Origin: Hyalangium minutum
GTDB taxonomy: Bacteria; Myxococcota; Myxococcia; Myxococcales; Myxococcaceae
Direction of reading: 5' to 3'
NCBI RefSeq assembly: GCF_000737315.1
Contig: NZ_JMCB01000002.1
Location: 434,001 to 498,000, forward strand
Length of the DNA: 64,000 nt
Part shown: positions 1 through 32,300 of the stretch, one piece after another
Position numbering within the stretch: position 1 is the stretch's first letter
How the letters are laid out: each line of letters opens with the position of its first letter
Notes under the pieces: model-generated
The model's input: only the letters and a program-made list of their open reading frames with translations
The model's database searches: none
What the model was told of the DNA's origin: nothing
Made by a program: the position numbers and the translations under genes

Positions 1-471
1 ATTGGAGGGCACAAGAAGTTCGTGTTCGTCCCTCATGCCCTGGAAGAGCGAGGTTACCTGACGCTCGGACACGCTCTTCGGGCCGGTGAATACGCCATCA
101 TCCAGACGCTCGAGTCCGACAGTGCCTACTTCGTCGAGCGGTGGAGCTATCCCGATGAGCAGCTCAGGGACAAGGCGCTCGAGTTCGTGAGGAAGTATTG
201 CAGGGACATCCTCATTGGTCTCTTCCGGTCCTCCGAACACGCGCCCCCTTCTCTCTTCTTCGCGCACCGGGAGCACGTGCACGTCGCGGCACACATCGTG
301 ATGGCGGACAGTCTCATCCACCCCAAACGAGGTTTTCCCATGCTGCTCGAAGTCGCGGATTCCTCCTGCAGGGGCGTGTTTGGCACGGACTCCTTCCAAG
401 GGCTTGTCCAGGACGCCTACACGCGCGCGGGTGGCAAGTACGAGTACTTCAACGAGCGGCACTGGCGGTAG
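1..471 (+). CDS. NurA-like (RNase H/PIWI-fold) nuclease, C-terminal part; 5' end lies outside the window
   Basis: Frame 1 is open from base 1 (IGGHKKFVFVPH...) to TAG at 469-471. C-terminal GFPMLLEVAD resembles the NurA GYPxxLxxAH/D motif. Ends 6 nt before a HerA ATPase, the usual NurA partner. Catalytic N-terminal Asp not visible. Confidence 0.6.
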   Translation: MGGHKKFVFVPHALEERGYLTLGHALRAGEYAIIQTLESDSAYFVERWSYPDEQLRDKALEFVRKYCRDILIGLFRSSEHAPPSLFFAHREHVHVAAHIVMADSLIHPKRGFPMLLEVADSSCRGVFGTDSFQGLVQDAYTRAGGKYEYFNERHWR

Positions 472-477
472 CGGGAG

Positions 478-2748
478 ATGGAAGACATGGCGGATGAGAA
501 TTTGCCGAAGTTATCGGGGGTATCCCAGGGCAACAGTCCCTCGCGAGCGGTGGGGGGAGATCCCCGAGAGGTTCCTCGCTCCGCTGGAGGGGGCCTGCCT
601 GAAAGGCCTGTGCGTCTGGGAGCCGCGGTAGGAGCCATGGGGCAAGGTCGGCCGCCTGAGGCGACGACCCTTCCGGCCGCTGGCACACGCCAGGCACCTC
701 GGCCCCCTGTTCGGGAGACTGCCACTCCGGGCAAGCCCGTACCTTCTCCGGCCGCGAGCGCACCTCGGAGCGAGTCCCCACGTCCCGCACAACCGGCAGG
801 AGTCCGGGCCCAGCAGCCTCCGCGGCCCGACGGCAGCCCCAAAGAGGTTCTCCAGAGGCTTCCTGAGGCGGAAGCCCATGCGTTCACCGAGCTGCGCTCC
901 CAGGCGAATGCGGCAGCGGCGGAACTGAACCCCGAGCTCGAGAACGCAGTGGGGTTCACTCATTTCGACACCGCGTCGAGCCAGGACAACCTCATCACCG
1001 TGCTGATGACGCGGGCTGATCTGCACAAGTTGCCCTCGCAGACACTCGTGCGGGTGAAGTCCCTGGAAGACAAGCGCTCCTACCTGGGCGTGGTCGTCCG
1101 CGGCCCCTTCTCCGAGCCGGATGCCGTGGCCGCCAACTCCAACATCGCCGTGGGCGTGGTCGTCCAGGGCAAGAAGCTCTCCTTTACCTTTGATTACCAC
1201 GGCCGGGCCGAGATCGAGATCCTTGGCGAGGAGAACGACGGCAAGGTGCTTCCCCCCGGCCACCGCCCGCGCCCCAAGAGCCCCGTCTTCCTGCTGGATG
1301 ACGAAGAGAGCGAGCACGTCCTGGGGATGAAGGGAGAACTGTGTCTTGGAATGGTCGTGGGCTACAAGCAGATGGAGGCGCGCATCGACGCCCTGGACAA
1401 GTCCATCCTGCCCCGCCATACGGGCATCATCGGGACCACCGGCGGTGGCAAGTCCACCACCGTCGCGACGCTCATCCACCGGGCCCAGTCCGCTGGAGTC
1501 GCCACCATCGTCTTCGATGTGGAAGGTGAATACACCCATGTGGACCAGGCCACCGACGAGCCGACGATGCTCGCGGCACTCCAGCGCAGGAAGCAGCGGC
1601 CCGAGGGGGTGAAGGATCTGCACATCCATCACCTGATAGGCCGTGACACCCGCAACCGCCGTCATAAGCACCGGCATCCCTTCGCGTTGAGCTTCTCGAG
1701 CCTCTCACCCCATGCCATCGCGGAGATTCTCGAGATGACGGACGCGCAGCAGGAGCGCTTCCACAAGGCCTACGAGGTCACCAAGCTGCTGTTGGAGGAT
1801 CTGAAGATCTTCCCGAAGACTCCCGAAGAGCAGCAGCAGTTGATGGAACTCGATGAGCTCTCCACGGGCTATCCGCGCATGACTCTCGAGCACCTCTTGG
1901 ATGTCGTGAGCACGTACATCTACGTCCTGAGCAGTGAGGGAAGGGCTGAGAGCAAGACCAAGACCAAAGGATCCTCCCGGCAGGCCCCGGTGCCCGGCGA
2001 GAACATCGAGGAGGGGGCCGTTGAGTCGGCACCCTCCCAAGGGCCTCGGCTCTTCAGCGAGTTCAAGGAGCACCTGCACCTGGTCTTCCGCCGCGTGCAT
2101 GAGCAGAGCAGCCGGAGCGAGGTGAGCTGGAAGGCCTTGTTTGGCAGGCTCCTGCGCCTGCGGCGCCTCAAAATCTTCGACGTGGGGCATGCACGAGGCG
2201 TGGATTACGACTCCATGCTGACCCCGGGGCGGGTGTCGGTGATCGATCTGTCGGACACAGACTCGCCCCAGCTCAACAATCTCGTCATCGCCGACATCCT
2301 CCGGGGGCTCCAGGAGCGGCAGGAGGAGCGCTACCAGCGGGCCCAGGAACAGAACCACCCCGTCGACCCGGCCCTCATCATCATCGAAGAGGCCCACGAG
2401 TTCCTCTCGGCCAGCCGCATCGCGCAGATGCCGGTGCTCTTCGAGCAGGTCGCTCGCATCGCCAAGCGCGGACGCAAGCGCTGGTTGGGGCTCGTCTTCG
2501 TCACCCAGTTGCCCCAGCACCTGCCCAACGAGGTGCTCGGCCTGCTCAACAACTTCATCATCCACAAGATGACCGACAGCACCGTCATCTCCCGGATGCA
2601 GAAGTCCGTGGGTGGGATCGACGAGAGCCTCTGGGGCCGCGTCCCCCGGCTGGCTCCCGGGCAGGCCATCGCCTCGTTCAGTTCCTTCAAGCGGCCTCTG
2701 ATGATCACCGTGGATCCCGCTCCCGTGAAGCGGTTGCTCGTGGATTGA
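478..2748 (+). CDS. herA: HerA/FtsK-superfamily ATPase (HAS barrel + DUF87 type) with a Pro/Ala-rich N-terminal extension
   Basis: Walker A GTTGGGKS, strand-2 VFDVEGEY, Walker B IIIEEAHEF, arginine finger/Q motif GRKRWLGLVFVTQLP. HAS-barrel-like region LVRVKS...YLGVV...PRPKSPVFL. RBS-like GGGAG before the ATG. Confidence 0.9.
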   Translation: MEDMADENLPKLSGVSQGNSPSRAVGGDPREVPRSAGGGLPERPVRLGAAVGAMGQGRPPEATTLPAAGTRQAPRPPVRETATPGKPVPSPAASAPRSESPRPAQPAGVRAQQPPRPDGSPKEVLQRLPEAEAHAFTELRSQANAAAAELNPELENAVGFTHFDTASSQDNLITVLMTRADLHKLPSQTLVRVKSLEDKRSYLGVVVRGPFSEPDAVAANSNIAVGVVVQGKKLSFTFDYHGRAEIEILGEENDGKVLPPGHRPRPKSPVFLLDDEESEHVLGMKGELCLGMVVGYKQMEARIDALDKSILPRHTGIIGTTGGGKSTTVATLIHRAQSAGVATIVFDVEGEYTHVDQATDEPTMLAALQRRKQRPEGVKDLHIHHLIGRDTRNRRHKHRHPFALSFSSLSPHAIAEILEMTDAQQERFHKAYEVTKLLLEDLKIFPKTPEEQQQLMELDELSTGYPRMTLEHLLDVVSTYIYVLSSEGRAESKTKTKGSSRQAPVPGENIEEGAVESAPSQGPRLFSEFKEHLHLVFRRVHEQSSRSEVSWKALFGRLLRLRRLKIFDVGHARGVDYDSMLTPGRVSVIDLSDTDSPQLNNLVIADILRGLQERQEERYQRAQEQNHPVDPALIIIEEAHEFLSASRIAQMPVLFEQVARIAKRGRKRWLGLVFVTQLPQHLPNEVLGLLNNFIIHKMTDSTVISRMQKSVGGIDESLWGRVPRLAPGQAIASFSSFKRPLMITVDPAPVKRLLVD

Positions 2749-2795: not shown

Positions 2796-2815
2796 CCCCC
2801 GAAAGGGGGGTATGC
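2796..2815 (+). repeat. 20-bp hairpin repeat, copy 1 (CCCCCGAAAGGGGGGTATGC)
   Basis: Read directly; 18/20 identical to 5176-5195. Forms a C5-GAAA-G5 stem-loop. Confidence 0.7.
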
Positions 2816-2860: not shown

Positions 2861-4495
2861 ATGTCGAAGGGAGAGCGGGTTCTTGTCATCTCGGGTCCGA
2901 TTGGAGCAGGCAAGAGCACGCTTGCCCAAGGACTCGTCGAGCGCCATGGAGCACATCGTGTCAGCTCTCGGGAGCTGTTGCTCGCGCGCATGGGAGAACG
3001 CAGTGGGGACCGGCGCACGCTCCAGGAGGCCGGTGCGGCGCTGGACCGCGAGACGGGTGGGCGCTGGGTGGCGGACAGCGTGAAGGAAGTCCTTCAGCGG
3101 CAGGAAGGACCGCCCCGTCTACTCATCGTGGACTCTGTCCGCATCGCATCCCAGGCCGAGGCGCTGCGAAGAGCCCTGGGGTCCCGGGTGGTGCATGTGC
3201 ACCTGTCCGCGCCGGAGCAAGAACTCGCGGCGCGATACGAACAACGGCGTTCGCGGGCGGTGTCCGACTCCGAGGGCACCTCGTTCGAGGAGGCCCGCGC
3301 CGATGCCACGGAGCGCGGAGTGGAGACGCTCGCGGAGTTCGCGGACCTGGCGCTGAACACACACCGGCATCCCCCCGAGGCGGTGCTGGTCCAGGTCGCA
3401 TGCCTGCTCGGGCTGTTTGGCCGAGACGTGGAGCGGCTCGTCGACGTGTTGGTCGGAGGCCAGTATGGAAGCGAGGGCAAGGGGCAGATCGCCTCCTATC
3501 TCGCGCCGGAATACGACGTCTTGGTGCGCGTGGGGGGGCCCAATGCCGGACATCGCGTGTACGAGGAGCTGGGGCCTTATACCTTCCACCAGCTTCCGTC
3601 GGGGACACGGGCGGCGCCTCGCGCGCGGGTGGCGCTGGGGCCTGGAGCCACTCTCTCGCTGACGTCTCTTCAGCAAGAGATCGCTGACTGCCGGATCGAG
3701 CCGGGGAGGCTCTTCATCGATCCCCAAGCGCTCGTCATCGAACCCTCGGACGTCGCGTTCGAGGAAGAGTCCTTGCGGAAGCAAATTGCGTCGACGGCAC
3801 AAGGTGTGGGGATGGCGACGGCGCGCAAGGTGCTGCGCACGGCGGCGAAGCCGCAGGTCCGGCTTGCGAAGGAGCTTGAAGAGCTGAGGCCCTTTCTCTC
3901 CCCTACGCGAGAGGTGCTGGAGGACACCTATGCGGGTGGCGGTAAAATCCTCGTCGAGGGGACCCAGGGGGCGGGTTTGAGCTTGCACCATGGGGATTAT
4001 CCGTATGTGACCTCGCGGGACACGACGGCGAGCGGGTGTCTGGCGGAGGCCGGCATTGCTCCAGGCCGGGTGCGTAAGACGCTTCTGGTATGCCGCACTT
4101 ATCCCATTCGGGTGCAGAACCCCGATGGAGGGGATGGCACCTCGGGCCCCATGAGCAGAGAACTTTCCTGGGATGAGATTGCCCAGCGCTCGGGCTTGCC
4201 TCTGGAGGAGCTGCTGACGCAGGAGCGTACCTCGACGACGAAGCGGCAGCGGCGAGTCTCCGAGTTCGATTGGAGCCTGCTGCGCAAGGCTGCCGCGCTC
4301 AATGCCCCCACGGACGTGGTGCTGACCTTCGTGGACTATCTCGCCGCGAGCAACAGGTCCGCCCGGCGCTTCGAGCAATTGACCCCAGAGGTGCACCACC
4401 TCATTGAAGGCATCGAGCGGGTCGCCCAGGCCCCGGTGTCGATCCTGTCCACGGGCTTTGGTTTTCAGAACATCCTCGACAGGAGGGCGTGGTGA
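2861..4495 (+). CDS. Fusion of an N-terminal P-loop (d)NMP-kinase-like domain and a short PurZ/archaeal-type adenylosuccinate synthetase-like domain
   Basis: Kinase: GPIGAGKST, RRTLQEAG, LIVDSVR. Synthetase (about aa 194-544): GGQYGSEGKG, GGPNAGH, IASTAQGVG, EGTQG...HHGDYPYVTSRD, RTYPIRV, STTKRQRRV, LTFVDYL. Confidence 0.9.
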   Translation: MSKGERVLVISGPIGAGKSTLAQGLVERHGAHRVSSRELLLARMGERSGDRRTLQEAGAALDRETGGRWVADSVKEVLQRQEGPPRLLIVDSVRIASQAEALRRALGSRVVHVHLSAPEQELAARYEQRRSRAVSDSEGTSFEEARADATERGVETLAEFADLALNTHRHPPEAVLVQVACLLGLFGRDVERLVDVLVGGQYGSEGKGQIASYLAPEYDVLVRVGGPNAGHRVYEELGPYTFHQLPSGTRAAPRARVALGPGATLSLTSLQQEIADCRIEPGRLFIDPQALVIEPSDVAFEEESLRKQIASTAQGVGMATARKVLRTAAKPQVRLAKELEELRPFLSPTREVLEDTYAGGGKILVEGTQGAGLSLHHGDYPYVTSRDTTASGCLAEAGIAPGRVRKTLLVCRTYPIRVQNPDGGDGTSGPMSRELSWDEIAQRSGLPLEELLTQERTSTTKRQRRVSEFDWSLLRKAAALNAPTDVVLTFVDYLAASNRSARRFEQLTPEVHHLIEGIERVAQAPVSILSTGFGFQNILDRRAW

Positions 4496-5169
4496 GCGGG
4501 ATTCGCGCGGACGACTTCTCCGAACGCTTTCCCCTCCTCTTTCACATGGCGGAGGCAGGGAGCTGGCCGAGCATCCAGCGCCATGGGCTGCTGAGCACCT
4601 CGGCGCTCCTGGACCTCTTCGAGGTGAGGGGCGAGCAGCGGGTGGCCTTGGAAGCACGGCATCGGCCCGAGTCTGTCACGCTCTATCACCCCCGGCACGG
4701 GACTGCGGTCGTGCGAGACCAGAAACCCATGGATGATGCAGGGCTGCTGCGGAGTCTGAGCGGCGGACTGTCTCCAACGGATTGGTACCAACTGCTCAAT
4801 GCCCGGGTGTTCTTCTGGGTCACCCACGAGCGGCTCACGAAGCTTCTCAATGCCCGAGCGTACCGGAACAAGCGGCAGACGGTGCTGACGCTAGACACCG
4901 CGCGGCTGCTGGCTCGCCATGAGGCGCGCGTCATGCTGTCCCCACTCAACAGTGGAGCGACGAAGCCATCTGCATGGCCTCGTGGACCGGACACCTTCCT
5001 GCCGATGGTGCGATACCCGTTCTCTTCTTGGGACCAGAGGCGCAAGCGCCGGGATCCGGTGGTCGAACTGACCGTCACCTATTCCGTGCCCGACATCAGG
5101 GACTTCGTGCTGCGAGTCGAGGAGTACGCGGGGGGGAAGCCAGACACGCTGTTGTTCAAGGCCAGGTGA
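4489..5169 (+). CDS. DarT-like ADP-ribosyltransferase-fold protein (DUF7002-like)
   Basis: LFHMAEAGSWPSIQRHGLLS matches the DarT N-terminal YHxTxxxNLxSIxxxGLLS pattern; central VFFW; C-terminal VVELTV carries a candidate catalytic Glu. GTG start overlaps the upstream stop (translational coupling). Confidence 0.65.
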   Translation: MVSGIRADDFSERFPLLFHMAEAGSWPSIQRHGLLSTSALLDLFEVRGEQRVALEARHRPESVTLYHPRHGTAVVRDQKPMDDAGLLRSLSGGLSPTDWYQLLNARVFFWVTHERLTKLLNARAYRNKRQTVLTLDTARLLARHEARVMLSPLNSGATKPSAWPRGPDTFLPMVRYPFSSWDQRRKRRDPVVELTVTYSVPDIRDFVLRVEEYAGGKPDTLLFKAR

Positions 5170-5175
5170 GTCACA

Positions 5176-5195
5176 CCCCCGAACGGGGGATATGC
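5176..5195 (+). repeat. 20-bp hairpin repeat, copy 2 (CCCCCGAACGGGGGATATGC)
   Basis: Read directly; lies 6 nt after the ART stop and 52 nt before the next ATG. Confidence 0.7.
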
Positions 5196-5247
5196 GTCTC
5201 TGCCTCGGGTCTCTAATTTGTGTCCTGAAGCAACCCAGGAGACGTCA

Positions 5248-5442
5248 ATGGCGACCGGAGTACAGGAGTTCAAGACGGGTGAGAAGTGCGAGACCAAAGG
5301 CAACTACGCGTTCGTTCGGTACGTGGACAATCCGCAGACCCCCCTTCCGACAATCAATGAGCGGAACATTCCTCTCGACAAGGGGGACACGTTCCCTCCC
5401 ATCAAGTCTCAGAACAGGGCAGCTTGGTGGAGGCTTACCTAG
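5248..5442 (+). CDS. Small YjzC-like protein (64 aa)
   Basis: AGGAG RBS then ATG 5248. FKTGEKCETKGNY...LDKGDTFPP...WWRL resembles the YjzC pattern (KxGEKAPxxGxY...LxKGDxFP). Confidence 0.65.
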   Translation: MATGVQEFKTGEKCETKGNYAFVRYVDNPQTPLPTINERNIPLDKGDTFPPIKSQNRAAWWRLT

Positions 5443-5502: not shown

Positions 5503-6774
5503 CTACCGGCAGGGGTAGTTGGACTTCGTGCAGGTGACGCCGGAGTTATACGAGTCGTTGAAGTGGGCGTAGTACCCGTCATAGAGCGGGTGCGTCGTCC
5601 CGGTCTCGCCCGCCAACTTGACGAAGATCTCCTCGTTCTCGTTGAGCGCGTCCTGGGACCAGTTCTGCGAGCCCGTGTACACCCGGTACTGGTACGCGGA
5701 GCCGTACTTGCCGTACACGAGGAAGAACTTGTCGTGCACCTTGTCGTGCCGGCGGATGTTCACCCCCGCATCCAGCAGCGAGTTGTAGACCGACTGCGCC
5801 ATGTCGATGCCGTCGGTCGAGTTCCCGCTCACCACCATCCACACCGCGCAGCCCCCGTTGCGGTAGCGCAGCACCTGGTTGAGTAGCTCCGGGCGCCCCG
5901 TGGTGACGAACGCCATGCCAATGCGCAGGCGGCAGTTCGCGTCCGGCGTGACGTCGTTCAGCCGCGTGACGATGGTGTCCGTCTGGCCCACGGCCTCGGG
6001 CGAGGCGTAGACGTCCGCAGGGTTGGACAGGTAGTAGCCCCGGCCGCTCGCCGAGTCGTAGTAGTCATTGTTGGCGTAGTGCCGCCGGTTCCACATGTCC
6101 GAGAAGTGGGCGTTGAGCCCGTCGTACAGCGTGACGGCGTCATACACGGTGATGGCGTTGTTGGACGCATCCGGTCCGCTCGCGTACGTCAGGTTCGATG
6201 AGCCGAACCAGGACACGTTCGGGTAGAGCACCCCGCTGGGATCCGTCGCCTGGCTGAACGTGAACATCTTCGTGTGCATATTGCCGGCGCTGCTCGTGCC
6301 GATGCAGCCCCCGCCACCACTCGCGTTGGTGCAGAACTTCGCGTTGGCGATCTTCTTGAGGGTCGCCACCGCCGGATCCGTGGAGGCTGCGTTCTTCCCA
6401 TCCAGCACCAGGGACACAGAGACGCCCCGCGTCTGCGCCGCCAGCAGCGCATCCGCCACGCCATCAATGCTGATGGAGTGAATGGCGCCCCGGATGGTGC
6501 CACCCGCGGGCGTGCTGTGGATGAGCCGCTTCAGCTCGTCCGTGATGGTGTAGTCCCGGCCCGAGAACGCGGGCGGGTTGCTGAAGTGTGCCCAGACCCG
6601 CTTGCCGCCCACCGTCCCCGTCGCGGAGCTGATCCCCGCCTGAACGACGCCGGTCTCCTCGCCCAGGAGCTCTTCTTCCTCGGGAGAGCGAGGCGCGCAG
6701 GCGGTGAGCGCCGCCGCGCTGAGAGCCACTGCCAGTGCCTGCAGAACCGCCTCAATGTTTGTCCGCGAACGCAT
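5503..6774 (-). CDS. Phospholipase D-superfamily lipoprotein with two HxK modules
   Basis: Start MRSRTNIE at 6774 follows GGAGG; lipobox LTAC; HTK...GSSN and HDK...GSQN motifs. The ORF-track extension to 7182 is upstream read-through. Confidence 0.8.
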   Translation of the reverse strand: MRSRTNIEAVLQALAVALSAAALTACAPRSPEEEELLGEETGVVQAGISSATGTVGGKRVWAHFSNPPAFSGRDYTITDELKRLIHSTPAGGTIRGAIHSISIDGVADALLAAQTRGVSVSLVLDGKNAASTDPAVATLKKIANAKFCTNASGGGGCIGTSSAGNMHTKMFTFSQATDPSGVLYPNVSWFGSSNLTYASGPDASNNAITVYDAVTLYDGLNAHFSDMWNRRHYANNDYYDSASGRGYYLSNPADVYASPEAVGQTDTIVTRLNDVTPDANCRLRIGMAFVTTGRPELLNQVLRYRNGGCAVWMVVSGNSTDGIDMAQSVYNSLLDAGVNIRRHDKVHDKFFLVYGKYGSAYQYRVYTGSQNWSQDALNENEEIFVKLAGETGTTHPLYDGYYAHFNDSYNSGVTCTKSNYPCR

Positions 6775-6867
6775 CTGCTCCCTCCAGGGGCTCGACAACC
6801 CGAGAAAGCCAGAATCACGGAGATAATGATAAATCAAGTGCTCCAGGAGCCGGTGACTTTCGATATT

Positions 6868-6886
6868 GAAAATGAGAACCATTATC
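6868..6886. promoter_or_regulatory. Fur box
   Basis: GAAAATGAGAACCATTATC is 16/19 to GATAATGATAATCATTATC, in an AT-rich gap upstream of hmuY; a partial box GATAATGATAA lies at 6822-6832. Confidence 0.8.
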
Positions 6887-6976: not shown

Positions 6977-7735
6977 ATGAATCGCGAGACCCGAGCCCGA
7001 TGGGTATGGGCGATGATGATGATGTCGATGGTGCCGCTGTGGGCAGGCTGCGGCACGGACGACGAGCCCGAGCCCGCACCGAAGTGTGAGGCCAGCGCCG
7101 TGCGGTGCACCGAGCAGAGCATCGACCAGCTCGACCTGCTCACCACCGTGTCCACGGGAGAGATTCGCGAGGAGGGAACCACCTCCGGCCAGTTCCATAC
7201 CTATGTGGATGCTCGCGCGGGCGGGCTCACGCCCACGCAGTCCTATACCTACGTCAGCTTCACCGAGCAGGGGCTGACCCGGGTGTCGGTGGATGATCAG
7301 GCGGCACTGGCGTCGACGGACTGGGACATTGCCTTCCGCCGCTTCGTCATCCGGGTGAACAGCGGCGTCTCGGGGCCCTCCTGCGTCTCCGTGGCGCAGG
7401 CCCCGGTGGGCACGACCTTTGACTCGGTGACCCGGGTGGACCCCGCGTGGCAGTTCCGCACGGAGAACTACTTCACGGAGACCTGCGAGCTCGTCGAGGA
7501 CGACACCGGCATCGGCGCGCCGGCCGCGGTGATGGGCAGCTACTGGTCCTACGAGAGCTGTCTGGTCATGACGGGCAACGTCTTCGTGCTGCGTCTGGCC
7601 GACAGCCGCCACGTCAAGGTGCAGGTGACGAGCTACTACGAGCCCTCGGTCCAGGAGACGTGCAACCAGACGGGGAGCGCGACCCAGCCGAGCGGCGCGG
7701 CGCAGTTCCGGGTCAAGTGGGCCTTCCTCCCGTGA
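6977..7735 (+). CDS. hmuY: HmuY-family heme-binding lipoprotein
   Basis: Lipoprotein signal ending WAGC; WDIAFRR and VKVQVTSYY motifs; Fur box upstream. Start could be 6944 or 6950. Confidence 0.8.
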   Translation: MNRETRARWVWAMMMMSMVPLWAGCGTDDEPEPAPKCEASAVRCTEQSIDQLDLLTTVSTGEIREEGTTSGQFHTYVDARAGGLTPTQSYTYVSFTEQGLTRVSVDDQAALASTDWDIAFRRFVIRVNSGVSGPSCVSVAQAPVGTTFDSVTRVDPAWQFRTENYFTETCELVEDDTGIGAPAAVMGSYWSYESCLVMTGNVFVLRLADSRHVKVQVTSYYEPSVQETCNQTGSATQPSGAAQFRVKWAFLP

Positions 7736-9201
7736 GGTGGGCGGCGCTGGCGGTCCTCGCCTTCGCCGGGTGTGGCCCGGGCCACTCAGCGCCCGAGCCA
7801 CATGACCGCTCACAGGCCGCGTTGTTGGCGGAGAGCCGGCCGACCTCTCCGTCCTCGAGCCTGCCGCGCTTCGAGGCCACCGAGCAGGTGGAGTCCGTGG
7901 TGTCCCCTGGGGCGCATTTCCGCATCCACTTCACGCGCAGCGGGCCCAATGCGGTGAAGGCTGCGGATGCCGATGGCAATGGCATCCCGGATGCGGTCGA
8001 CATCGTGGCTCGGACCTACGATCGGGTCGCGGCCTTCTACGCGGGGCTGGGCTACCTGCCTCCGCCCGAGGACTCCTGGCTGCCGGGAGACTTCGGCGGA
8101 GACGGGCTCTTCGATGTCTACCTGTTGGACTTCGCCGGGCGTGCGGACGGGGCGTTCCGGACAGATGGTTGCCAGGGCGCGGAGAGCCAGTGCTCGGGGC
8201 ACATGCTCCAGGAGAATGACTTCACCGGGTACAGCTACCGCTCCTATGAGGAGGCGGTGGACACGCTGGCCAGCCATGAGTTCTTCCATGCCGTGCAGGC
8301 CGCCTACCACCCCAACCTCGGGAGCGTGGCGGTGGAGGGCACCGCGGTCTGGGCGACGGAGCGCTTCGCCCCGGCCTTGGAGGATCTGGAGCAGTTCTCC
8401 TCCGCGTACCTCGATCGGCCGGATCGCAGCCTGGTCGTGGATCCCGACGGGCCGGGCAGCTTCTCCTACGGCTCCTCGCTCTACTTTCAGTTCTTGAGCG
8501 AGCGCTTCGGAGACCGGCTCATCCTGTCGATGTGGGAGGAGAGCGTCCGCACCCCCAGCGTGCGCTGGCCGGCGCTGGTGGATACCGTGCTGCGCCGCGA
8601 TTCGGGCGCGGACTTCGACCGTGCCTTCGCGGAGTTTGCCCAGTGGAACATGGCCACCGGTTCACATGCCCGGCCGGGCCAGGGGTACGCGCGCGGCGAG
8701 GGCTATGCCGAGCTCACCTCCTCCTCCAAGACCTTCCCAGTGGATGAGCCCTCGGTGCGGGTGGCTCCTGCCTCGACGCGATACTTCGAGGTGGCGGGAG
8801 CACAGAACATCTCCGTGAGCTTCCAGCCCACGGATGATGCGGAGACAGGGGCGCTCCACCTCCTGGTGGCAGTGGTGGGCCAGGACGGCACGCTCCAGGT
8901 GACCCGGGCGGACAGTCCAGGGGCTCTGCTCGCCCAGGTGTCCGCGCAGGGTGCCTCCCGCGTGCTGGTGGCGGTCGTGGATGGGCGCCACCAAGGGCTG
9001 GGGCGGTACGGGCGGCTCTGCATCACGGACACCGCCACCGGCTCGCCTTGCGGCGGGGACGCTCCCTCCGATGGCGAGGACAAGGACACGGGCTGCCAGT
9101 CAGCCCCCGGCGGATGGACGTGGTGGCTGTCCTGGCTGGTGCTGGCCGCTGGCGGGTACCGCCCCCTCCGGAAGCGGTCTCACCTCGAAGCTTCGCGCTG
9201 A
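7732..9201 (+). CDS. MXAN_6640-type secreted zinc metalloprotease lipoprotein with a MYXO-CTERM-like tail
   Basis: GTGA overlap with hmuY; lipobox FAGC; HEFFH zincin motif followed by EGTA; C-terminal GCQSAPGG + hydrophobic stretch + RPLRKR. Confidence 0.75.
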   Translation: MRWAALAVLAFAGCGPGHSAPEPHDRSQAALLAESRPTSPSSSLPRFEATEQVESVVSPGAHFRIHFTRSGPNAVKAADADGNGIPDAVDIVARTYDRVAAFYAGLGYLPPPEDSWLPGDFGGDGLFDVYLLDFAGRADGAFRTDGCQGAESQCSGHMLQENDFTGYSYRSYEEAVDTLASHEFFHAVQAAYHPNLGSVAVEGTAVWATERFAPALEDLEQFSSAYLDRPDRSLVVDPDGPGSFSYGSSLYFQFLSERFGDRLILSMWEESVRTPSVRWPALVDTVLRRDSGADFDRAFAEFAQWNMATGSHARPGQGYARGEGYAELTSSSKTFPVDEPSVRVAPASTRYFEVAGAQNISVSFQPTDDAETGALHLLVAVVGQDGTLQVTRADSPGALLAQVSAQGASRVLVAVVDGRHQGLGRYGRLCITDTATGSPCGGDAPSDGEDKDTGCQSAPGGWTWWLSWLVLAAGGYRPLRKRSHLEASR

Positions 9202-10229
9202 GAGGCCGTGGCGCTCACGCCCCGCTCCACGAAGCGCTCGAGGGTTGCCCGGATCTGCGCGCGCATGTTGGCGGCCGATTCGGGCTTTCCCTCGCGCTGG
9301 CGCTGCCGGTAGGTCTCCGCGAGCGCGAAGAGCTCCTCCGAGCGCCTCCGCCCCTCGGCGTTCTCTCTCATCGTGAGGTGGGGATGGGCCTGGAAGAGGG
9401 CGTGCCACTCCTGGCGCACCTCGCTCCAGAAGCCCTGCGTGTCCGTCCAGTAGGCGCTCGCCTCGGGCAGGCTCTGGGCCTCCGGCAGCCGGGTGTAGAC
9501 GTTGAGTCCCCGCTCCCGTACCAGCGCATGCGGCACCGGGCCGAGCACCACCTTCAGGCTGTCCTGCTCGTGCACCCAGCCCGTGGGCGTCAAGGCGTGC
9601 CGGTTGGTGCCAGTCAGGACGTCGTAGTCGCTCCGCTTCGTGTACTCGCGGCGCGGCAAGGGGCGCCATGTCTCGCCGGACTGCCAGGAGGACACTCCGC
9701 GAGCATGGGTCCAGCGCCCCGAGCCCTCATACCGAGGCCCATCGTCGACCTCGAACACGGCTTGGCTCCACGTACACCGGGCCTCCGCCGGGGACAGCGC
9801 ATGGTGCTCCCATGACTGGCGGCCGCGAAACTCGAGCAACTCGGTGTCCTCGAACGTCCAGTCCTGGCGCCAGTGCTTGAGGGGCGCTGGCTGTCCGTCT
9901 TTCGTCACCACCAGGATGTGCTGGAGCGACACGCGCCCCGGCGTGTCCTCCACCACCCCCACCCACTCCGTCCCCGTGGTGCGGTAGGGAGCCCGCGGCG
10001 TGTAGCCCTCGCTGAGGCTCACCGTCTCTTCAAAGGCGAACTCCACCCGGTAGCTTCCCGCCATGCGAAGAATCGCGGCCCTGTCGCGCTCCGGATCACA
10101 CCCCTCTGCCGCCGGCGCTTCCACCTGGACCGTGGGGGAGATGCTCCGAGGCGCGCAGGCCAGGGTCAGTGTGAGCAGGGCCCAGCGCGGCACAGGGCTC
10201 CTCCGTGGCTCCGTTGTGTGGAACGTCAT
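9180..10229 (-). CDS. DUF6607-like lipoprotein
   Basis: DRAAILRMAGSYRV, HWRQDWTFED, PLPRREYTKRSDY and GWVHEQD motifs; in an operon with hmuY and the TonB receptor. Confidence 0.7.
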   Translation of the reverse strand: MTFHTTEPRRSPVPRWALLTLTLACAPRSISPTVQVEAPAAEGCDPERDRAAILRMAGSYRVEFAFEETVSLSEGYTPRAPYRTTGTEWVGVVEDTPGRVSLQHILVVTKDGQPAPLKHWRQDWTFEDTELLEFRGRQSWEHHALSPAEARCTWSQAVFEVDDGPRYEGSGRWTHARGVSSWQSGETWRPLPRREYTKRSDYDVLTGTNRHALTPTGWVHEQDSLKVVLGPVPHALVRERGLNVYTRLPEAQSLPEASAYWTDTQGFWSEVRQEWHALFQAHPHLTMRENAEGRRRSEELFALAETYRQRQREGKPESAANMRAQIRATLERFVERGVSATASQREASR

Positions 10230-10306
10230 GGGATGCCCTCCGGTTGAGATGGGAAGCCGGTGTTGAAGGTGTGAGCTGTCACTTCATGGGCGTGCGTGTC
10301 CCAGCC

Positions 10307-10963
10307 CTATCCTTGAGGGGCAGGCGGCTTCACGCTCCCCCAGTGGAGCTGGAACATCGCTGGGGTCCCTGCCGCGTCGTAGTAGGACAGGATCCGCACC
10401 TTGAAGTAGGCGCCCTCATCCGTCCGGACGACATAGAGCATGCTGCGCGGCGAGAGCTGGTGCGTCCTCGGGTCGTAGCTGTACCAGGCCGTTCCCGACT
10501 CGAAGGCGGTGTCCGGGTCCGTGTTCTCGTCGGCACCATCCTCCGCGTCGGTGACGTACCCCTCCGCGGGGGCTTGGCTCACCTGGGCAAAGTCCGCGTC
10601 CGCAAGGATGGCCGCCGCTACGGCTCCGCTGCCATTCACGCCTCCCCGGACGCGGATGTGAAACCGCTGGAAGGCCAAGTCCCACTGCTTGTCCTCGGTC
10701 CCCTCTACCTGCTGACGCTGATCCAGGTCGAAGCCGATCCACTTCTCCGAGCTCGTCGCGTCGAGGGTGGTGGTGAGGGTGCCGTCGCCGTTGTCCACGT
10801 GGCGGATGTTCGGCTCTTGCGGCGCGTTGCCAGGATCCTCGATGTCGGGAACGTCGTCGGGATTCGGCTGGAGGTCCGGGCCACAGGCCGCCAGCCACCC
10901 CGTGAGGAGCAGCACCGAGGCGAGGGGACGGCGGAGCGCGGGGCGAAGGGGCAGGGCACGCAT
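10307..10963 (-). CDS. hmuY: Second HmuY-family lipoprotein
   Basis: Start MRALPLRP; lipobox LAAC; WDLAFQRF and YFKVRILSYY motifs. Confidence 0.8.
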   Translation of the reverse strand: MRALPLRPALRRPLASVLLLTGWLAACGPDLQPNPDDVPDIEDPGNAPQEPNIRHVDNGDGTLTTTLDATSSEKWIGFDLDQRQQVEGTEDKQWDLAFQRFHIRVRGGVNGSGAVAAAILADADFAQVSQAPAEGYVTDAEDGADENTDPDTAFESGTAWYSYDPRTHQLSPRSMLYVVRTDEGAYFKVRILSYYDAAGTPAMFQLHWGSVKPPAPQG

Positions 10964-10992
10964 GCGAGTCACCTGAGGGAAAGCGAGGAGCA

Positions 10993-12906
10993 TCAGAGCT
11001 GGAAGGACAGCCCGGCTTGGAAGGTGCGAGGCAGGATGGGCAGATCCGTGGTGTTGCCAGTCGCGGTGAGGTTGGAGCCGGCCACGAAGAGGCGGAAGCC
11101 CGCGGGGAGCTGCTGAGAGGCGCGGGCGTCCAGCGAGACGTAGGGGTCGGACTGATACGGGTCCGCGGTCCCATCCCCGTCCACGTCCGGGTAGAAGGGG
11201 CGGGGGCCCACGAGCGCGCCGCGCACCCACGCCTCCAGTCCCCAGGGCCGGAAGCGCCAGGTGGCCTGGGCCGTGAAGCGGTGGCGGGCCTGGCCCTCCA
11301 GGGGCTCTCCGGTGGTCTGATCCCTGCCGACCGTGAGCGTGTAGCTGGCGTCCACGGTGAGGCCGCCGGGGATGCGCTGGCGCAGGCCCACTTCGCCTCC
11401 GCGGACGCTGGCCCGCTCGAGGTTGGTGTAGATGAAGTGCTGCCCCTCCGTGTCTTGCCGGAGCGAGATGGTGATCATGTCCCGCAGCGAGTGCTGATAG
11501 CCACTCAGCCAGAGCAGAGTCGGCGCGGCGGGCCGCAACTCCACGGACAGGTTCACGCTGCGGGAGCGCTCGGGCTGCAGGTCCGGATTGCCGCGCACGG
11601 TGTAGCCCACCGAGGGATTCTCGAAGTCGAGCAGCAGCTCCTGGAAGCTGGGCGCACGCAGCCCCCAGCCATAGCTGGCCCGGAGCGTGACGCGGGAATG
11701 CGGATCCAGCCGCAGTGCGAGCCGCGGCGTGATGGCAGGGCCGAACTGCGAGTCCAGATCGAGCCGCGCCCCCGGGACGAGGATGAGGCGCGGCTGGAGG
11801 AGCACCGTCCAGTTGTCCTGCACGTAGAGCGACGCGCGGCCCCGCTGCCCGCTCCCGCTGTCCAGCCGGTCCGCTGCGAGGTGCTCTCCGAGCAGCTCCA
11901 CGCCTTGGATGAGCACATGCCGCTCTCCGAGCTTCAGATCGAGCTGACCGCCGAGCTGGGCCAGCTGATCCCGCGTGTCCTCCACCGAGTCGAGCGCGGT
12001 CCCCTGGCGCTGGTCGAGCAGGTAGCGGCGCTTGAACCCCGTGTAGTACGCCTCCGTGCGGAGGCTCATCGTGTCACTGAGCCGCCAGGAGGGCGACAGC
12101 CTCACGGACAAGGTGTCATCCCGGCTGGCGCGGTCGAAGGTGGCGCCCGTCGCTCCGAGGTCGACTCCGCGCTGGACGCGCCGGGAGTAGGACAGCGTGC
12201 TGGCCAGCTCCGAAGACTCCCCGCGCACGTCCCCGCGAGCGGAGACCTGGAAGCCCGCGAGGCTGCTGCCCGTGGTGCCAATGTCCGCGGGCTCCAAATC
12301 GTAGGCATCGCGGCGCTGTAGGCCTCCACTCACCCGCAGGCCCCAGTCCTCCCGCTGCATCTCACCCGTGGCGTCCACGTCGGCCTGCCGCAGGCTCCCG
12401 TACGTCACACGAAGGTCGGCGCCGAGCGGGCGGCGGGCCCGGCGGGTGATGAGGTTCACCACTCCCGCCACCGCGTCACTTCCATAGAGGACCGAGGAGG
12501 GACCTTTGACGATCTCCACCTGCTCGATGTCCTCCAGAGAGATGCGGGACAAGTCCACCGCGCCATTGACGCGCCCGTTGACCCGCTCGCCGTCCACGAG
12601 GACCAGCGCGTACTCGGGCCCGAGTCCCTGCACTTGGAGGGTGGCCCCCGAGAACGTGGACTGCACCTCCAGCCCCGGCTGGGCGCCGAGCAGCTCCGCG
12701 ACGCTCTGGGCCCCACTGGCCACGATCTCCGCGCGGGTGATGACCTCGGTCGCGACCGGAGTGTCCTCCAGCCGCTCGGGAGAACGGGCGGCCGTCACCA
12801 CTGTCTGCGCGGGAGGAGCCTCCACGCCGCCGTCAGAGGGCTCCTCGCCCCAGGCCCTCCACGGAATGGCGACCGCCACGAAGAGAAGACACCAGCGCCC
12901 CGACAT
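10993..12906 (-). CDS. TonB-dependent receptor (heme/siderophore type)
   Basis: Plug motifs VVTAARS and IEQVEIVKGPSSVLYGSDAVAGVVNLIT; NPDLQPERS; C-terminal aromatic beta strand; Fur box upstream. Confidence 0.92.
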   Translation of the reverse strand: MSGRWCLLFVAVAIPWRAWGEEPSDGGVEAPPAQTVVTAARSPERLEDTPVATEVITRAEIVASGAQSVAELLGAQPGLEVQSTFSGATLQVQGLGPEYALVLVDGERVNGRVNGAVDLSRISLEDIEQVEIVKGPSSVLYGSDAVAGVVNLITRRARRPLGADLRVTYGSLRQADVDATGEMQREDWGLRVSGGLQRRDAYDLEPADIGTTGSSLAGFQVSARGDVRGESSELASTLSYSRRVQRGVDLGATGATFDRASRDDTLSVRLSPSWRLSDTMSLRTEAYYTGFKRRYLLDQRQGTALDSVEDTRDQLAQLGGQLDLKLGERHVLIQGVELLGEHLAADRLDSGSGQRGRASLYVQDNWTVLLQPRLILVPGARLDLDSQFGPAITPRLALRLDPHSRVTLRASYGWGLRAPSFQELLLDFENPSVGYTVRGNPDLQPERSRSVNLSVELRPAAPTLLWLSGYQHSLRDMITISLRQDTEGQHFIYTNLERASVRGGEVGLRQRIPGGLTVDASYTLTVGRDQTTGEPLEGQARHRFTAQATWRFRPWGLEAWVRGALVGPRPFYPDVDGDGTADPYQSDPYVSLDARASQQLPAGFRLFVAGSNLTATGNTTDLPILPRTFQAGLSFQL

Positions 12907-29203: not shown

Positions 29204-29301
29204 GTCCCCAAGGCAGCTTCATGCCCTGCTAGGGGATCCAACAGGTAGGCGTGGCGCGCATTGACGGCGTGCTGTACCTGTGTTCAGGCTACGGGTGCGC
29301 C

Positions 29302-32300
29302 ATGGCTCCGCAGATCTCCATTGATTTCCACGCCGCTCAGGCGGCTCACCCCTCGTTGATGCCCTTCCATCCGGTGGTGCGCCGGTGGTTCGCGGAGCGG
29401 CTGGGCGAGCCCTCGCAGCCCCAGGTCGAGGGCTGGCCGCTCATTCAAGCGGGGCATGACGTCCTCATCGCCGCCCCCACCGGCAGCGGTAAGACGCTGA
29501 CCGCCTTCCTGGCCGCACTCGATGGGTTGTTCCGCCAGGCGCTCGAAGGCACGCTCCGGGACCAGACGCAGGTGCTGTACGTGTCGCCCCTCAAGGCCCT
29601 GGGCAACGACGTGCAGAAGAACCTCCTGCAGCCGCTCGAGGAGCTGCTCACCCGGGCCCGTGCCGAGGGCTACTCGCCCCAGGACCTGCGCGTCCAGGTG
29701 CGCACCGGTGACACCTCCGCCTCCGAGCGCGCGCAGATGATCAAGCGCCCGCCGCACATCCTCATCACCACGCCGGAGTCGCTCTACCTCTACCTCACCG
29801 CCGATCGCGCCCGCGCCACCCTGCGCGCCGTCCACACCGTCATCGTGGACGAGATCCACGCCCTCGCCCGCGACAAGCGCGGCAGCCACTTCACGCTCTC
29901 CCTGGAGCGGCTCAAGGTCCTCACCGAGGTGCGCCCTCAGCTCATCGGCCTGTCCGCTACCCAGAAGCCGCTGGACCGGATCGCTGGCTTCCTCACCGGC
30001 GCCACCCTCCAAGAGTGCAAGCGCGTCGAAGTGGGCCACGTGCGTCCCTGGGACCTCACCGTCGAGATTCCCGACGCAGAGCTGAGCTCCATCGCCTCGC
30101 ACGAGATGTGGGGCCAGATCTACGACCGATTGGTGCAGCTGACCTCGGAGCACCGCACCACGCTCATCTTCGTCAACACGCGCAAGATGGCCGAGCGCGT
30201 GGCGCATGACCTCGGCGAGCGCCTGGGCAAGCACAAGGTCGCGGCCCACCACGGCAGCATGTCGCGAGAGATTCGCCTCTCCGCCGAGGAGCGGCTCAAG
30301 AGCGGCCAGCTCGTGGCGATGGTGGCCACCGCCTCGCTGGAGCTCGGCATCGACGTGGGCAACGTGGACCTCGTGGTCCAGTTGGGCACCACGAAGGCCA
30401 TCTCCGTGCTGCTCCAGCGCGTGGGCCGCGCCGGCCACTATAAAGGTGGCATCTCCAAGGGCCTCCTCTTCGCGATGACCCGCGACGAGCTGGTCGAGTG
30501 CGTCGCGCTGCTCAACGCCGTGCGCGAGGGCGAGCTGGACGCGGTGCGCATCCCCGAGAAGCCCATGGATGTGCTCGCGCAGCAGATCGTCGCCGCCTGC
30601 GCCTGCGAGGAGTGGGACGAGCGTGCCCTGTTCTCCGTCTTCCAGCGCGCCTACCCGTACCGGGACCTCACGTGGGAGGAGTACCAGTCCGTAGTGGAGA
30701 CGCTCTCGGAGGGCATCTCCCTGCGCCGGGGCCGCAGCGGCGTGCACCTGCACCGCGACCGGGTGAACCACAAGCTGAAGGGACGCCGCGGCGTGCGCAT
30801 CACCGCGCTGACCAATGGCGGTGCCATCCCCGACACCTTCTCCTTCTCCGTCACCGCCGAGCCCGAGGGAAAGATTGTCGGCCAGCTCGACGAGGACTTC
30901 GCGGTGGAGTCCTCCCCCGGCGACATCTTCCTGCTGGGCTCCACGGCGTGGCGCATCCAGCGCGTGACGGGCAGCACCGTGCAGGTGGAGGACGCGAAGG
31001 GCGCTCCCCCCACGGTGCCCTTCTGGCGCGGCGAGGCCCCTGGCCGCACCGACGAGCTGTCCCTCCAGGTGGGCCGCCTGCGCGAGGAGTTGCTGCGGCA
31101 CGATGACCCCGCAGCCTTCCTCCAGAAGCAGCTGCAGGTGCCCGCCCCCGCGACGGACGCGCTGCTGGGCTACCTGCGCCTGGGACAGAAGATGCTAGGC
31201 GGCGTGATTCCCAGCCACACCACCGTGGTGGCCGAGCGCTTCTTCGACGAGGCGGGCGGCATGCAGCTCATCATCCACGCGCCCTTCGGTAGCCGCATCA
31301 ACCGCGCGTGGGGCCTGGCCCTGCGCAAGCGCTTCTGCCGCTCCTTCGACTTCGAGCTGCAGGCCGCTGCCACCGAGGACGGTCTCCTGCTCTCCCTGGG
31401 CGAGCAGCACTCCTTCCCGCTGGGCGACATCTTCGAGTTCCTCCACCCGGACAACGTGGAGGAGGTGCTGGTGCAGGCCGTGCTCCAGGCCCCCATCTTT
31501 GGCACCCGCTTCCGGTGGAATGCGACGCGCTCGCTGGCGCTCAACCGCTTCTCCGGCGGCAAGCGCGTGGCCCCCAACCTCCAGCGCGCCCGGAGTGAGG
31601 ACCTGCTGGCCGCCGTCTTCCCCGCGCAGGTGGGCTGCCAGGACAACCACGGCGGTGGCGACATCGAGCTGCCGGGCCATCCGCTGGTGAAGCAGACAAT
31701 GGAGGACTGTCTGCGCGAGGCCATGGACATCGACGGCCTGCGCGAGGTGCTCCGCCGCATCAAGGATGGGCGCATCCGCCTGGAGGCCCGTGATGTGCCG
31801 GAGCCCAGCGTCTTCGCCCACCAGATGATCAACAGCATGCCGTACACCTTCCTGGACGACGCGCCAGCGGAGGAGCGGCGGGTGCGCAATGTGGCGCTGC
31901 GCCGGGCCATGCCCGCCGAGGATGCGGCGGCCTTCGGGGCGCTCGACGCCGGAGCCATCGCCCAGGTGGTGGAGGACGCGGCGCCCCCCATGCGCGACGC
32001 GGACGAGCTGCACGATGCGCTGCTGCAGTTGGTGCTGCTGCGGTCCTCGGAAGTGCCTCGGGGGCTGGATGCGCCGCTCTTCGCGCAGGGCCGTGTGGCG
32101 TGGCTGGAGCTTCCGGGCGGACGCTTCCTGGTCCCCGCCGAGCGTGGCACTGCCGTCCGGGCGCTTTTCCCCGAGGTGGCGACTCAGCCGGAGCTGCCGC
32201 TGCTGGAGGGCGACAAGCCCATGGAGCGGGACGCGGCGGTGCTCCAGGTGGTGCGCGGGTATATGGAGATGCTCGGGCCCACCACCGCGGGCGAGCTCGC

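Follow-up and report, generated by a model that had tools for sequence, protein, structure and literature searches.

A DarT-related ADP-ribosyltransferase-fold protein coupled to a kinase/PurZ-like synthetase in Hyalangium, in a variant without the macrodomain gene of its relatives

Introduction

An ADP-ribosyltransferase (ART) paired with a macrodomain, as in DarTG, is an established kind of toxin-antitoxin and anti-phage system. DarT2 attaches ADP-ribose to thymidine and DarT1 to guanosine in ssDNA, with a toxicity that the eraser relieves. PurZ, which turns dGMP and Asp into dSMP, is the enzyme that starts 2-aminoadenine DNA synthesis. Here we describe a locus in which a predicted distant relative of DarT is coupled to an enzyme with the catalytic signature of PurZ. 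It lies in a stretch of 64,000 nucleotides from Hyalangium minutum, which we call the window (contig NZ_JMCB01000002.1, positions 434,001 to 498,000; public record GCA_000737315.1, JMCB01000002.1, of a Hyalangium-type myxobacterium). A gene for a protein of the DUF7002 family follows there, with overlapping ends, a gene that fuses a nucleoside monophosphate (NMP) kinase domain to an adenylosuccinate synthetase (AdSS) domain. These two genes are the pair in what follows. An earlier note on this DNA, made from the letters alone, had called the DUF7002 protein a DarT-like ART coupled to the synthetase, with no DarG or NADAR antitoxin.

What appears to be the same family has already been published in silico. 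A 2025 survey of Legionella ARTs (BMC Genomics, PMC12522546) defines an ART-like family, 'Lmac_3114', with the motifs Hxx, FFW and xxE and with DarT and Tpt1 (PTS_2-RNA) as its nearest relatives by HHpred and FFAS; in about 60% of cases the gene next to it encodes an adenylosuccinate synthetase. The survey places PTS_2-RNA in the HHh clade and the Lmac_3114 family in HYE owing to its Glu, gives the family a NUDIX partner in P. aeruginosa, and proposes metabolic regulation (purine or NAD metabolism) instead of a role in conflict. Judged by motifs and gene neighbour rather than by sequence comparison, the Lmac_3114 family appears to be DUF7002, in which case the DarT likeness and the synthetase neighbour are in print as well.

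For comparison, 185,579 species genomes (one genome per species) were scanned for DUF7002. The distribution was sporadic, with 332 matches, and we examined 80 of these together with two other loci, 82 in all. The window belongs to the locus L083, whose position 5510 is position 1 of the window, and about 5.5 kb of upstream flank were included. The neighbour clusters 3, 4, 6, 7, 10 and 13 from high-G+C loci were seemingly conserved and were discarded as artefacts of antisense or overlapping open reading frames (ORFs).

Results

The coordinates of all features are collected in Table 1. Read from the upstream of its two possible starts, the DUF7002 ORF begins with GTG and encodes 226 aa, and the public gene call begins one codon later and gives 225 aa (P0001). 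The start at 4492 and the TGA stop (4493-4495) of the 544-aa ORF upstream (2861..4495) form a GTGA overlap, which bears out the overlap that the earlier note had read. The motifs that it had quoted are all found as well: FHMAEAGSWPSIQRHGLLS (H19, S28-I29, G33-L-L-S36), in which H19 sits in FHMA, VFFW (107-110) and VELTV (192-196). Its family label is right, because the Pfam DUF7002 model (PF22531) matches over its whole length and far beyond chance (residues 15-207 on model positions 1-195 of 195; E=8.5e-76; 254.3 bits vs a cut-off of 27). The family has 3687 matches at 90% clustering and 1911 clusters at 50% identity, nearly always as stand-alone proteins of about 220 residues. Eleven residues are invariant in 82 of 82 genomic copies: H19, R59, R76, D77, N104, W110, R115, N154, G156, R165 and E193. 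The protein is basic (isoelectric point 10.2), which fits a nucleic-acid or nucleotide ligand. The NCBIfam library gave no informative match for the ART.

Sequence searches of PDB chains with the protein and with its profile returned nothing useful. An AlphaFold2 model from 30 homologues reached a predicted local distance difference test score (pLDDT) of 92.2 and a predicted template modelling (TM) score of 0.89. When this model was compared with the PDB by Foldseek, as the earlier note had proposed to do against DarT, an ART-like fold was returned. Ranks 1-39 are all ARTs, DarT1 8baq and DarTG 7omu hold ranks 2 and 3, and the E-values are 1.2e-3 for cholera toxin A1, 1.3e-3 for E. coli DarT1 8baq and 1.6e-3 for Thermosipho DarTG 7omu; Thermus DarT, pertussis-like toxins, Tpt1/KptA and Rhs ART toxins are among the other matches in the top 39. 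A viral structure library gave the same picture. Since the E-values lie around 1e-3 and the TM-scores of the ART matches are 0.36-0.45, the model supports an ART fold at the superfamily level only.

A profile-profile comparison connects the family more specifically with DarT. We aligned 130 diverse DUF7002 sequences with 10 genuine DarT (DUF4433) sequences from plasmids, using hhalign in local mode. The alignment extended over 150 columns with a probability of 77%, P=2e-5 and a score of 40.4, vs at most 17.2 for the controls (one reversed DarT alignment and 20 column-shuffled ones). It pairs H19 with H10, R59 with R48, FFW with FYF, and E193 with the catalytic E162 of DarT. The predicted catalytic arrangement of DUF7002 reads H...F/W...E, with F109/W110 as its aromatic part. 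On the other side, the Pfam DarT model (PF14487/DUF4433) matched 0 of 30 aligned DUF7002 members at E<=10. Judged by these profiles, DUF7002 is a distant DarT homologue that makes up a separate family and is not DarT. The description as a DarT-like ART is therefore apt for the fold and for the distant homology with aligned catalytic positions, but it does not extend to membership of the DarT family, whose models in Pfam (E<=10) and PADLOC (E<=0.1) gave no match.

The partner encoded directly upstream combines two enzymes. Its kinase domain matches the NCBIfam adenylate kinase model (3.5e-7), and its best PDB matches are all adenylate kinases, at about 1e-4. Its synthetase domain matches P. horikoshii PurA at 6e-47 and the phage enzymes PurZ0 and PurZ at about 1e-33 (PurZ0 7vf6, 9e-34; PurZ 6fm1 and 7odx), and it stays below the curated NCBIfam cut-offs both for archaeal PurA (271 vs 368) and for PurZ (NF038379; 217 vs 300). 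In the P-loop of the synthetase, GSEGKG, a Ser replaces Asp13 in the window copy and in 38 of 38 family members checked. This position is Asp in 99% of PurA, and it is Ser in 100% of 147 phage PurZ sequences (PMC12884076). Because Ser stands for Asp13 as in phage PurZ, the synthetase is PurZ-like in its catalytic signature. Where the annotation or Pfam calls of a locus were read, none of the Z-genome genes DatZ, MazZ and DpoZ stood out, and no dedicated search for them was made.

The coupling of DUF7002 to the synthetase, also claimed at the outset, is real and conserved. In 43-44 of the 82 loci, DUF7002 directly follows the kinase-synthetase gene. Of 37 loci, 22 have the two genes overlapping by 4 nt and another three by 7 nt. 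In a Bryobacterales locus (L047, 6384-8657), NMP kinase, PurZ-like synthetase and DUF7002 are naturally fused into a single 757-aa protein. DUF7002 and the NMP-kinase/PurZ-like synthetase thus form a translationally coupled two-gene unit. Among the 82 loci the pair spans more than eight bacterial phyla as well as archaea, including Myxococcota, Acidobacteriota, Verrucomicrobiota, Planctomycetota, Gemmatimonadota, Alphaproteobacteria, an actinobacterium (Thermoleophilaceae), and Nitrososphaerota and Bathyarchaeia archaea. It is also carried on plasmids or megaplasmids of Rhizobium, Agrobacterium, Ralstonia and Burkholderia. A transposase and an integrase flank the copy on a B. thailandensis plasmid, and the copy in one further locus (L021) comes after a phage-type integrase. 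The AdSS domains of archaea and myxobacteria share 59% identity, which points to horizontal transfer. Overall, the unit is sporadic and mobile: its hosts are archaea and soil bacteria from many phyla, plasmids carry it too, and it lies beside integrases and transposases.

The surroundings of the pair vary. In Corallococcus it adjoins glycosyl hydrolase and peptidase genes. In Sorangium (L002, 281-12493) it is preceded by genes for a 1085-aa DUF87/HerA-like ATPase, a STAND-WD40 protein and an EAD1-trypsin protein and is followed by a DUF6119 gene, with Rhs/PAAR toxin genes close by. On a Rhizobium plasmid (L100), a gene for an HD-domain YfbR-like 5'-deoxynucleotidase (4779-5330, minus strand) is divergent from the pair and provides a second nucleotide-pool enzyme beside the PurZ-like gene. 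In 38-39 of the 82 loci, mostly from Acetobacteraceae, DUF7002 stands alone among ordinary genes, with neither macrodomain nor synthetase; its neighbours in the Acetobacteraceae are DapF-like, GFA-like and ABC transporter genes. One such 'stand-alone' gene, in a Gemmatimonadaceae locus (L015), is preceded by a remnant (7738-7980) that matches just the last 80 residues of the synthetase, which suggests decay of the partner gene.

We then turn to the question of an eraser. Among the Pfam calls for all genes across the window and about 5.5 kb upstream there is no macrodomain, NADAR, ADP-ribosylglycohydrolase (ARH) or NUDIX domain, and a search of the window and its flanks, translated in six frames, with a hidden Markov model (HMM) of the DUF7002-linked macrodomain gave no match. 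The statement that no DarG or NADAR antitoxin is present is therefore correct for this locus and its flanks, but it is not a rule for the family. Neighbour clustering revealed a gene of 450-480 aa directly upstream of the synthetase, and so two genes upstream of the ART, in 31 of 44 linked loci (about 70%). The N-terminal half of its product is an M78 (ImmA/IrrE, CapP-like) peptidase and the C-terminal half a macrodomain. Because 31 of the 44 carry it, the system most often takes the form of three genes in an operon, one of which encodes an eraser-type domain. The macrodomain profile matches BT1257 (2afc) at 3e-48, SCO6735 (5e3b) at 1.5e-45, the ALC1 macrodomain at 1e-22 and TARG1 at 1e-10, and more weakly Poa1p (6e-10) and DarG (5m31, 8e-6; 7omu, 2.5e-5). 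These matches place it in the ALC1-like class, which contains DarG.

All Myxococcota loci examined, the window included, are without this gene, and the window is a lineage-specific macro-less variant. From the many macro-less and stand-alone copies it can be argued that the ART is probably not constitutively toxic as DarT is. An alternative way of gating it gains support because about 39 stand-alone copies have intact catalytic residues and no partner. From gene content we may fairly infer, as the earlier note did, that the ART is held off in some way other than by an eraser.

In Hyalangium the pair stands behind another group of genes. The operon order on the source contig is a sigma70-region-2-like gene (202 aa), a weak helix-turn-helix (HTH) gene (125 aa; E about 0.004-0.04), an M78 peptidase (244 aa), a 393-aa protein, HerA, the kinase-synthetase and DUF7002. 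Because position 1 of the window falls within the 393-aa gene, the first three genes and most of the fourth are outside the window. The first five form a cassette that is conserved across Myxococcota (window 1-2748 plus about 2.4 kb upstream; L083 3096-8257). For the model of the 393-aa protein (pLDDT 70), the top ten Foldseek matches in the PDB are all NurA (2ygk, E=1.8e-6; HerA-NurA complex 9x1m), and several of its UniRef homologues are named 'NurA domain-containing'. The HerA gene matches PADLOC HerA models down to 5e-30 and PDB HerA 4d2i at 2.7e-24. Altogether, the sigma/HTH/M78/NurA/HerA cassette resembles a self-contained, regulated NurA-HerA module of the defence type.

HerA is missing from pair-bearing loci outside the closest relatives, and Cystobacter ferrugineus (L098) has the same five-gene cassette in the same synteny without the pair. 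The pair is thus an add-on behind an independent cassette, and the two look juxtaposed rather than interdependent. On these grounds, namely the cassette alone in Cystobacter and its absence from nearly all other paired loci, HerA/NurA was rejected as an integral partner of the pair. The local M78 peptidase matches PADLOC capP at 3.6e-9, covering the HEXXH region only, and the M78-macro fusion of relatives matches it at 1.8e-12. The local peptidase was also considered as a remnant of that fusion after loss of the macrodomain; the BLAST match between them covers just 43 residues around HEXXH, so they are not orthologous.

The pair is flanked by two similar hairpins. Positions 2796-2815 and 5176-5195 are identical at 18 of 20 bases, and both read CCCCCGAA(A/C)GGGGG(G) and then ATATGC. 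The hairpin at 2796 folds no better than shuffled sequence (z=-1.0) and is therefore a repeat, not a proven terminator. A simple promoter and terminator scan, which is uninformative for this organism, gave no promoter-like site in the 112-nt gap between HerA and the synthetase and no terminator-like site in the region. Stigmatella has the same hairpin-flanked arrangement. The repeats could be the footprint of the insertion of the pair, with an intergenic segment duplicated, or a shared terminator or attenuator.

The small YjzC-like gene downstream has a counterpart behind the pair in L003 and L005 alone, which are the closest relatives, and is probably not part of the system. Elsewhere in the window are a PLD-family (PLDc_2) protein gene convergent with the operon (5503-6882, minus strand), a haem-uptake-like cluster with two HmuY-like genes and a TonB-dependent receptor (6977-12906), a gene for a 1459-aa Lhr-type DEAD-box helicase with Lhr winged-helix domains (29251-33630, plus strand) and one for a 393-aa Fic-domain protein, Fic_N plus Fic (62606-63787, minus strand).

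Table 1. Features of the locus, in window positions
Feature	Position	Strand	Basis or context
NurA-like nuclease, C-terminal 156 codons of a 393-aa gene begun upstream of the window	1..471	+	Structure model
HerA-type hexameric ATPase, 753 aa as called	487..2748 (longest ORF from 478)	+	Pfam DUF87 4e-22, HerA_C
G+C hairpin CCCCCGAAAGGGGGG	2796..2810	+	In the 112-nt HerA-to-synthetase gap
NMP-kinase-like P-loop domain, N-terminal part of the 544-aa fusion	2861..3415	+	Pfam AAA_33 3.6e-10, AAA_18
Short archaeal-type adenylosuccinate-synthetase domain, PurZ signature	3431..4495	+	Pfam Adenylsucc_synt 5e-53
DUF7002 protein, predicted DarT-related ART-fold enzyme	4492..5169 (alternative GTG start 4489)	+	Pfam, AlphaFold2, Foldseek, hhalign
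Second hairpin copy CCCCCGAACGGGGG	5176..5189	+	Right after the DUF7002 stop
Small YjzC-like gene, 64 aa	5248..5442	+	Pfam YjzC 1.7e-9

Discussion

We propose, with a probability of roughly 45%, that the unit is a conflict module, acting in defence or in an abortive-infection or toxin-antitoxin-like manner. DUF7002 would use NAD+ to ADP-ribosylate a nucleic-acid base or nucleotide, the macrodomain of relatives would reverse or limit this modification, and the M78 peptidase fused to it would be the trigger. The kinase-synthetase would share a pathway or complex with the ART, its substrate being a guanine-type (deoxy)nucleoside monophosphate. In the Hyalangium lineage, the pair would have been added behind a self-standing sigma-like/HTH/CapP-like M78/NurA/HerA cassette. 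This lineage has no macro gene, so the ART would be controlled in one of three ways: at transcription, through the synthetase partner, or through a substrate that the cell normally lacks. A transcription gate would consist of the CapH/CapP-like HTH and M78 pair, if the genes are co-transcribed. The context of conflict is suggested by the STAND-WD40, EAD1-trypsin and DUF6119 genes in Sorangium, the integrase in L021, the transposase and integrase flanks in B. thailandensis, and the patchiness of the family.

Several observations weigh against a conflict module. Besides the window, many loci are without the macrodomain (13 linked loci and several plasmid copies), whereas DarG adjoins 10 of 10 DarT genes fetched, and the stand-alone DUF7002 copies keep every catalytic and invariant residue; a constitutively toxic enzyme of the DarT type should not be tolerated in this way. 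The role proposed for the kinase-synthetase is conjectural, and the 112-nt gap with its hairpin parts the HerA cassette from the pair, so that co-transcription is putative. No DUF7002 homologue was present in the 50,697 phage genomes searched, and no PADLOC model, DarT included, matched the ART at E<=0.1 or the synthetase domain. Literature searches on DUF7002 and on synthetase plus HerA plus defence found no experimental work. In the docking described in the Legionella survey, NAD+ takes a non-standard position (PMC12522546).

Other explanations can account for part of these data. In a small-molecule pathway, a free nucleotide would be processed first by the kinase-synthetase and then by DUF7002, and the product would serve as a signal or as a toxic analogue. 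The kinase-synthetase would, for example, turn a guanine-type NMP into a nucleotide of the succino- or 2-aminoadenine type, and DUF7002 would ADP-ribosylate this nucleotide or use it together with NAD+. The macrodomain (or NUDIX) of relatives would bind or degrade the product instead of erasing a DNA mark. We consider this doubtful, since the stand-alone copies without a synthetase keep every catalytic residue, the closest homologues of the ART (DarT, DarT1, Tpt1/KptA) act on nucleic acids, and the two-gene form comes without a conserved receptor or effector. Nevertheless, the tolerance of macro-less copies would be easily explained, the three catalytic modules are all of kinds that bind nucleoside monophosphates or dinucleotides and are naturally fused in one protein, and an HD 5'-deoxynucleotidase-like gene adjoins the pair on one Rhizobium plasmid. 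The partner, a macrodomain or, according to the survey, a NUDIX protein in P. aeruginosa (PMC12522546), also fits, as both process free ADP-ribose derivatives. A role in housekeeping or stress without conflict, such as the regulation of purine or NAD metabolism put forward in the same survey, would suit the stand-alone Acetobacteraceae copies among DapF-like, GFA-like and ABC transporter genes and the glycosyl hydrolase and peptidase neighbours in Corallococcus. Its prospects are slim given the very patchy spread, the carriage on plasmids and genomic islands, the archaeal-myxobacterial identity that points to horizontal transfer, and the M78-macro, STAND and EAD1 neighbours in relatives.

The two remaining alternatives concern the chemistry of the ART. 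A Tpt1/KptA-like enzyme would put ADP-ribose onto phosphates at the ends or in the interior of RNA or DNA, so as to remove a 2'-phosphate or cap a 5'-phosphate, in nucleic-acid repair or end modification, with the kinase supplying phosphorylated ends. Foldseek matches include 8tg3 (E=0.12), 9ld4 and 9lda, and Poa1p, of the ADP-ribose-1''-phosphate phosphatase type, is among the matches of the macrodomain profile (6e-10). The kinase domain matches Pfam AAA_33, a family that also takes in polynucleotide-kinase-type kinase domains; its best structural matches, however, are NMP kinases and not polynucleotide kinases. The structural matches to DarT are stronger than those to Tpt1 (1e-3 vs 0.1), the neighbourhood has neither ligase nor cyclic phosphodiesterase, and the invariant E193 aligns with the catalytic Glu of DarT, all of which makes this reading improbable. 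The survey lists PTS_2-RNA as nearest relative but assigns it to HHh and the family to HYE for that Glu (PMC12522546). Very improbable, in our view, is a NAD+ glycohydrolase (NADase), in which activated DUF7002 just depletes NAD+ like Res, SIR2 and TIR effectors. The pair does sit directly after a HerA gene, SIR2-HerA systems deplete NAD+ and HerA-partnered effectors are often NADases, and ART folds are able to evolve into NADases. By contrast, HerA is absent from all but the closest relatives and its cassette is found without the pair, a pure NADase would have little use for a macrodomain partner, and both the basic surface and the catalytic Glu of DarT type hint at an acceptor substrate.

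The pair matters in several respects. A DarT relative is tied, in bacteria and archaea, to a cellular enzyme whose signature was hitherto taken as diagnostic of phage PurZ. If both enzymes cooperate, NAD+-dependent nucleic-acid modification would be linked to non-canonical purine chemistry in cellular immunity, and the origin of PurZ would gain a cellular setting that can be tested. We see a slight chance of something further, namely that the kinase and PurZ-like synthetase make a 2-aminoadenine- or succino-guanine-type (deoxy)nucleotide and that the ART acts solely on this product or on nucleic acid containing it, which would be a new, base-substitution-dependent immunity. The ART would then be harmless until the synthetase product appears or DNA with such a base enters, which would explain why many copies need no eraser. 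On this reading, the cellular module may also represent the lineage that gave rise to phage PurZ. The macro-less variants, comprising this locus, other Myxococcota, the plasmid copies and the stand-alone genes, are a natural experiment on the safety of the ART without an eraser.

Comparison with known systems

The Lmac_3114 family shares with DUF7002 the motifs, the distant DarT/Tpt1 homology, the synthetase neighbour and overlapping taxa. The passages of the survey considered here make no mention of the M78-macro third gene, the PurZ-type Ser, kinase fusion as the rule, the triple fusion, archaeal members or the macro-less NurA/HerA-linked variant.

The HTH and M78 genes that open the operon just upstream of the window recall CapH/CapP, the DNA-damage-responsive HTH and M78 regulators of cyclic oligonucleotide-based anti-phage signalling systems (CBASS) and other defence operons. 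Such a regulator is putative here, with a capP match limited to the HEXXH region and a weak HTH. The locus also resembles HerA-NurA and HerA-partnered defence (SIR2-HerA, DUF4297-HerA), as HerA and NurA-fold nuclease genes lie immediately upstream of the pair on the same strand; it differs in that the cassette is found without the pair, and the pair without HerA in nearly all other lineages. With PurZ and PurZ0, the DUF7002-linked synthetase has in common the short archaeal-type AdSS scaffold and the Ser for the catalytic Asp13. Unlike them it is cellular, fused to an NMP kinase and below the NCBIfam PurZ cut-off.

The comparison with DarT/DarG comprises both parallels and differences. Both have the ART fold, and profile-profile homology aligns the conserved H, R, aromatic and catalytic Glu positions; most DUF7002 relatives encode an operon macrodomain of the ALC1-like class, as DarG is; and each also has a fused form, which is DarT-DarG in Thermosipho (7omu) for the one and synthetase-ART in the Bryobacterales locus for the other. 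By contrast, DUF7002 is a separate Pfam family that the DarT HMM does not match, its motif II is FFW instead of FYF, and it has its own insert of about 30 residues with an invariant RDQKPM (R76-D77-Q78-K79-P80-M81). Its linked macrodomain is fused to an M78 peptidase, and a kinase-PurZ-like gene is obligate between the macrodomain and the ART.

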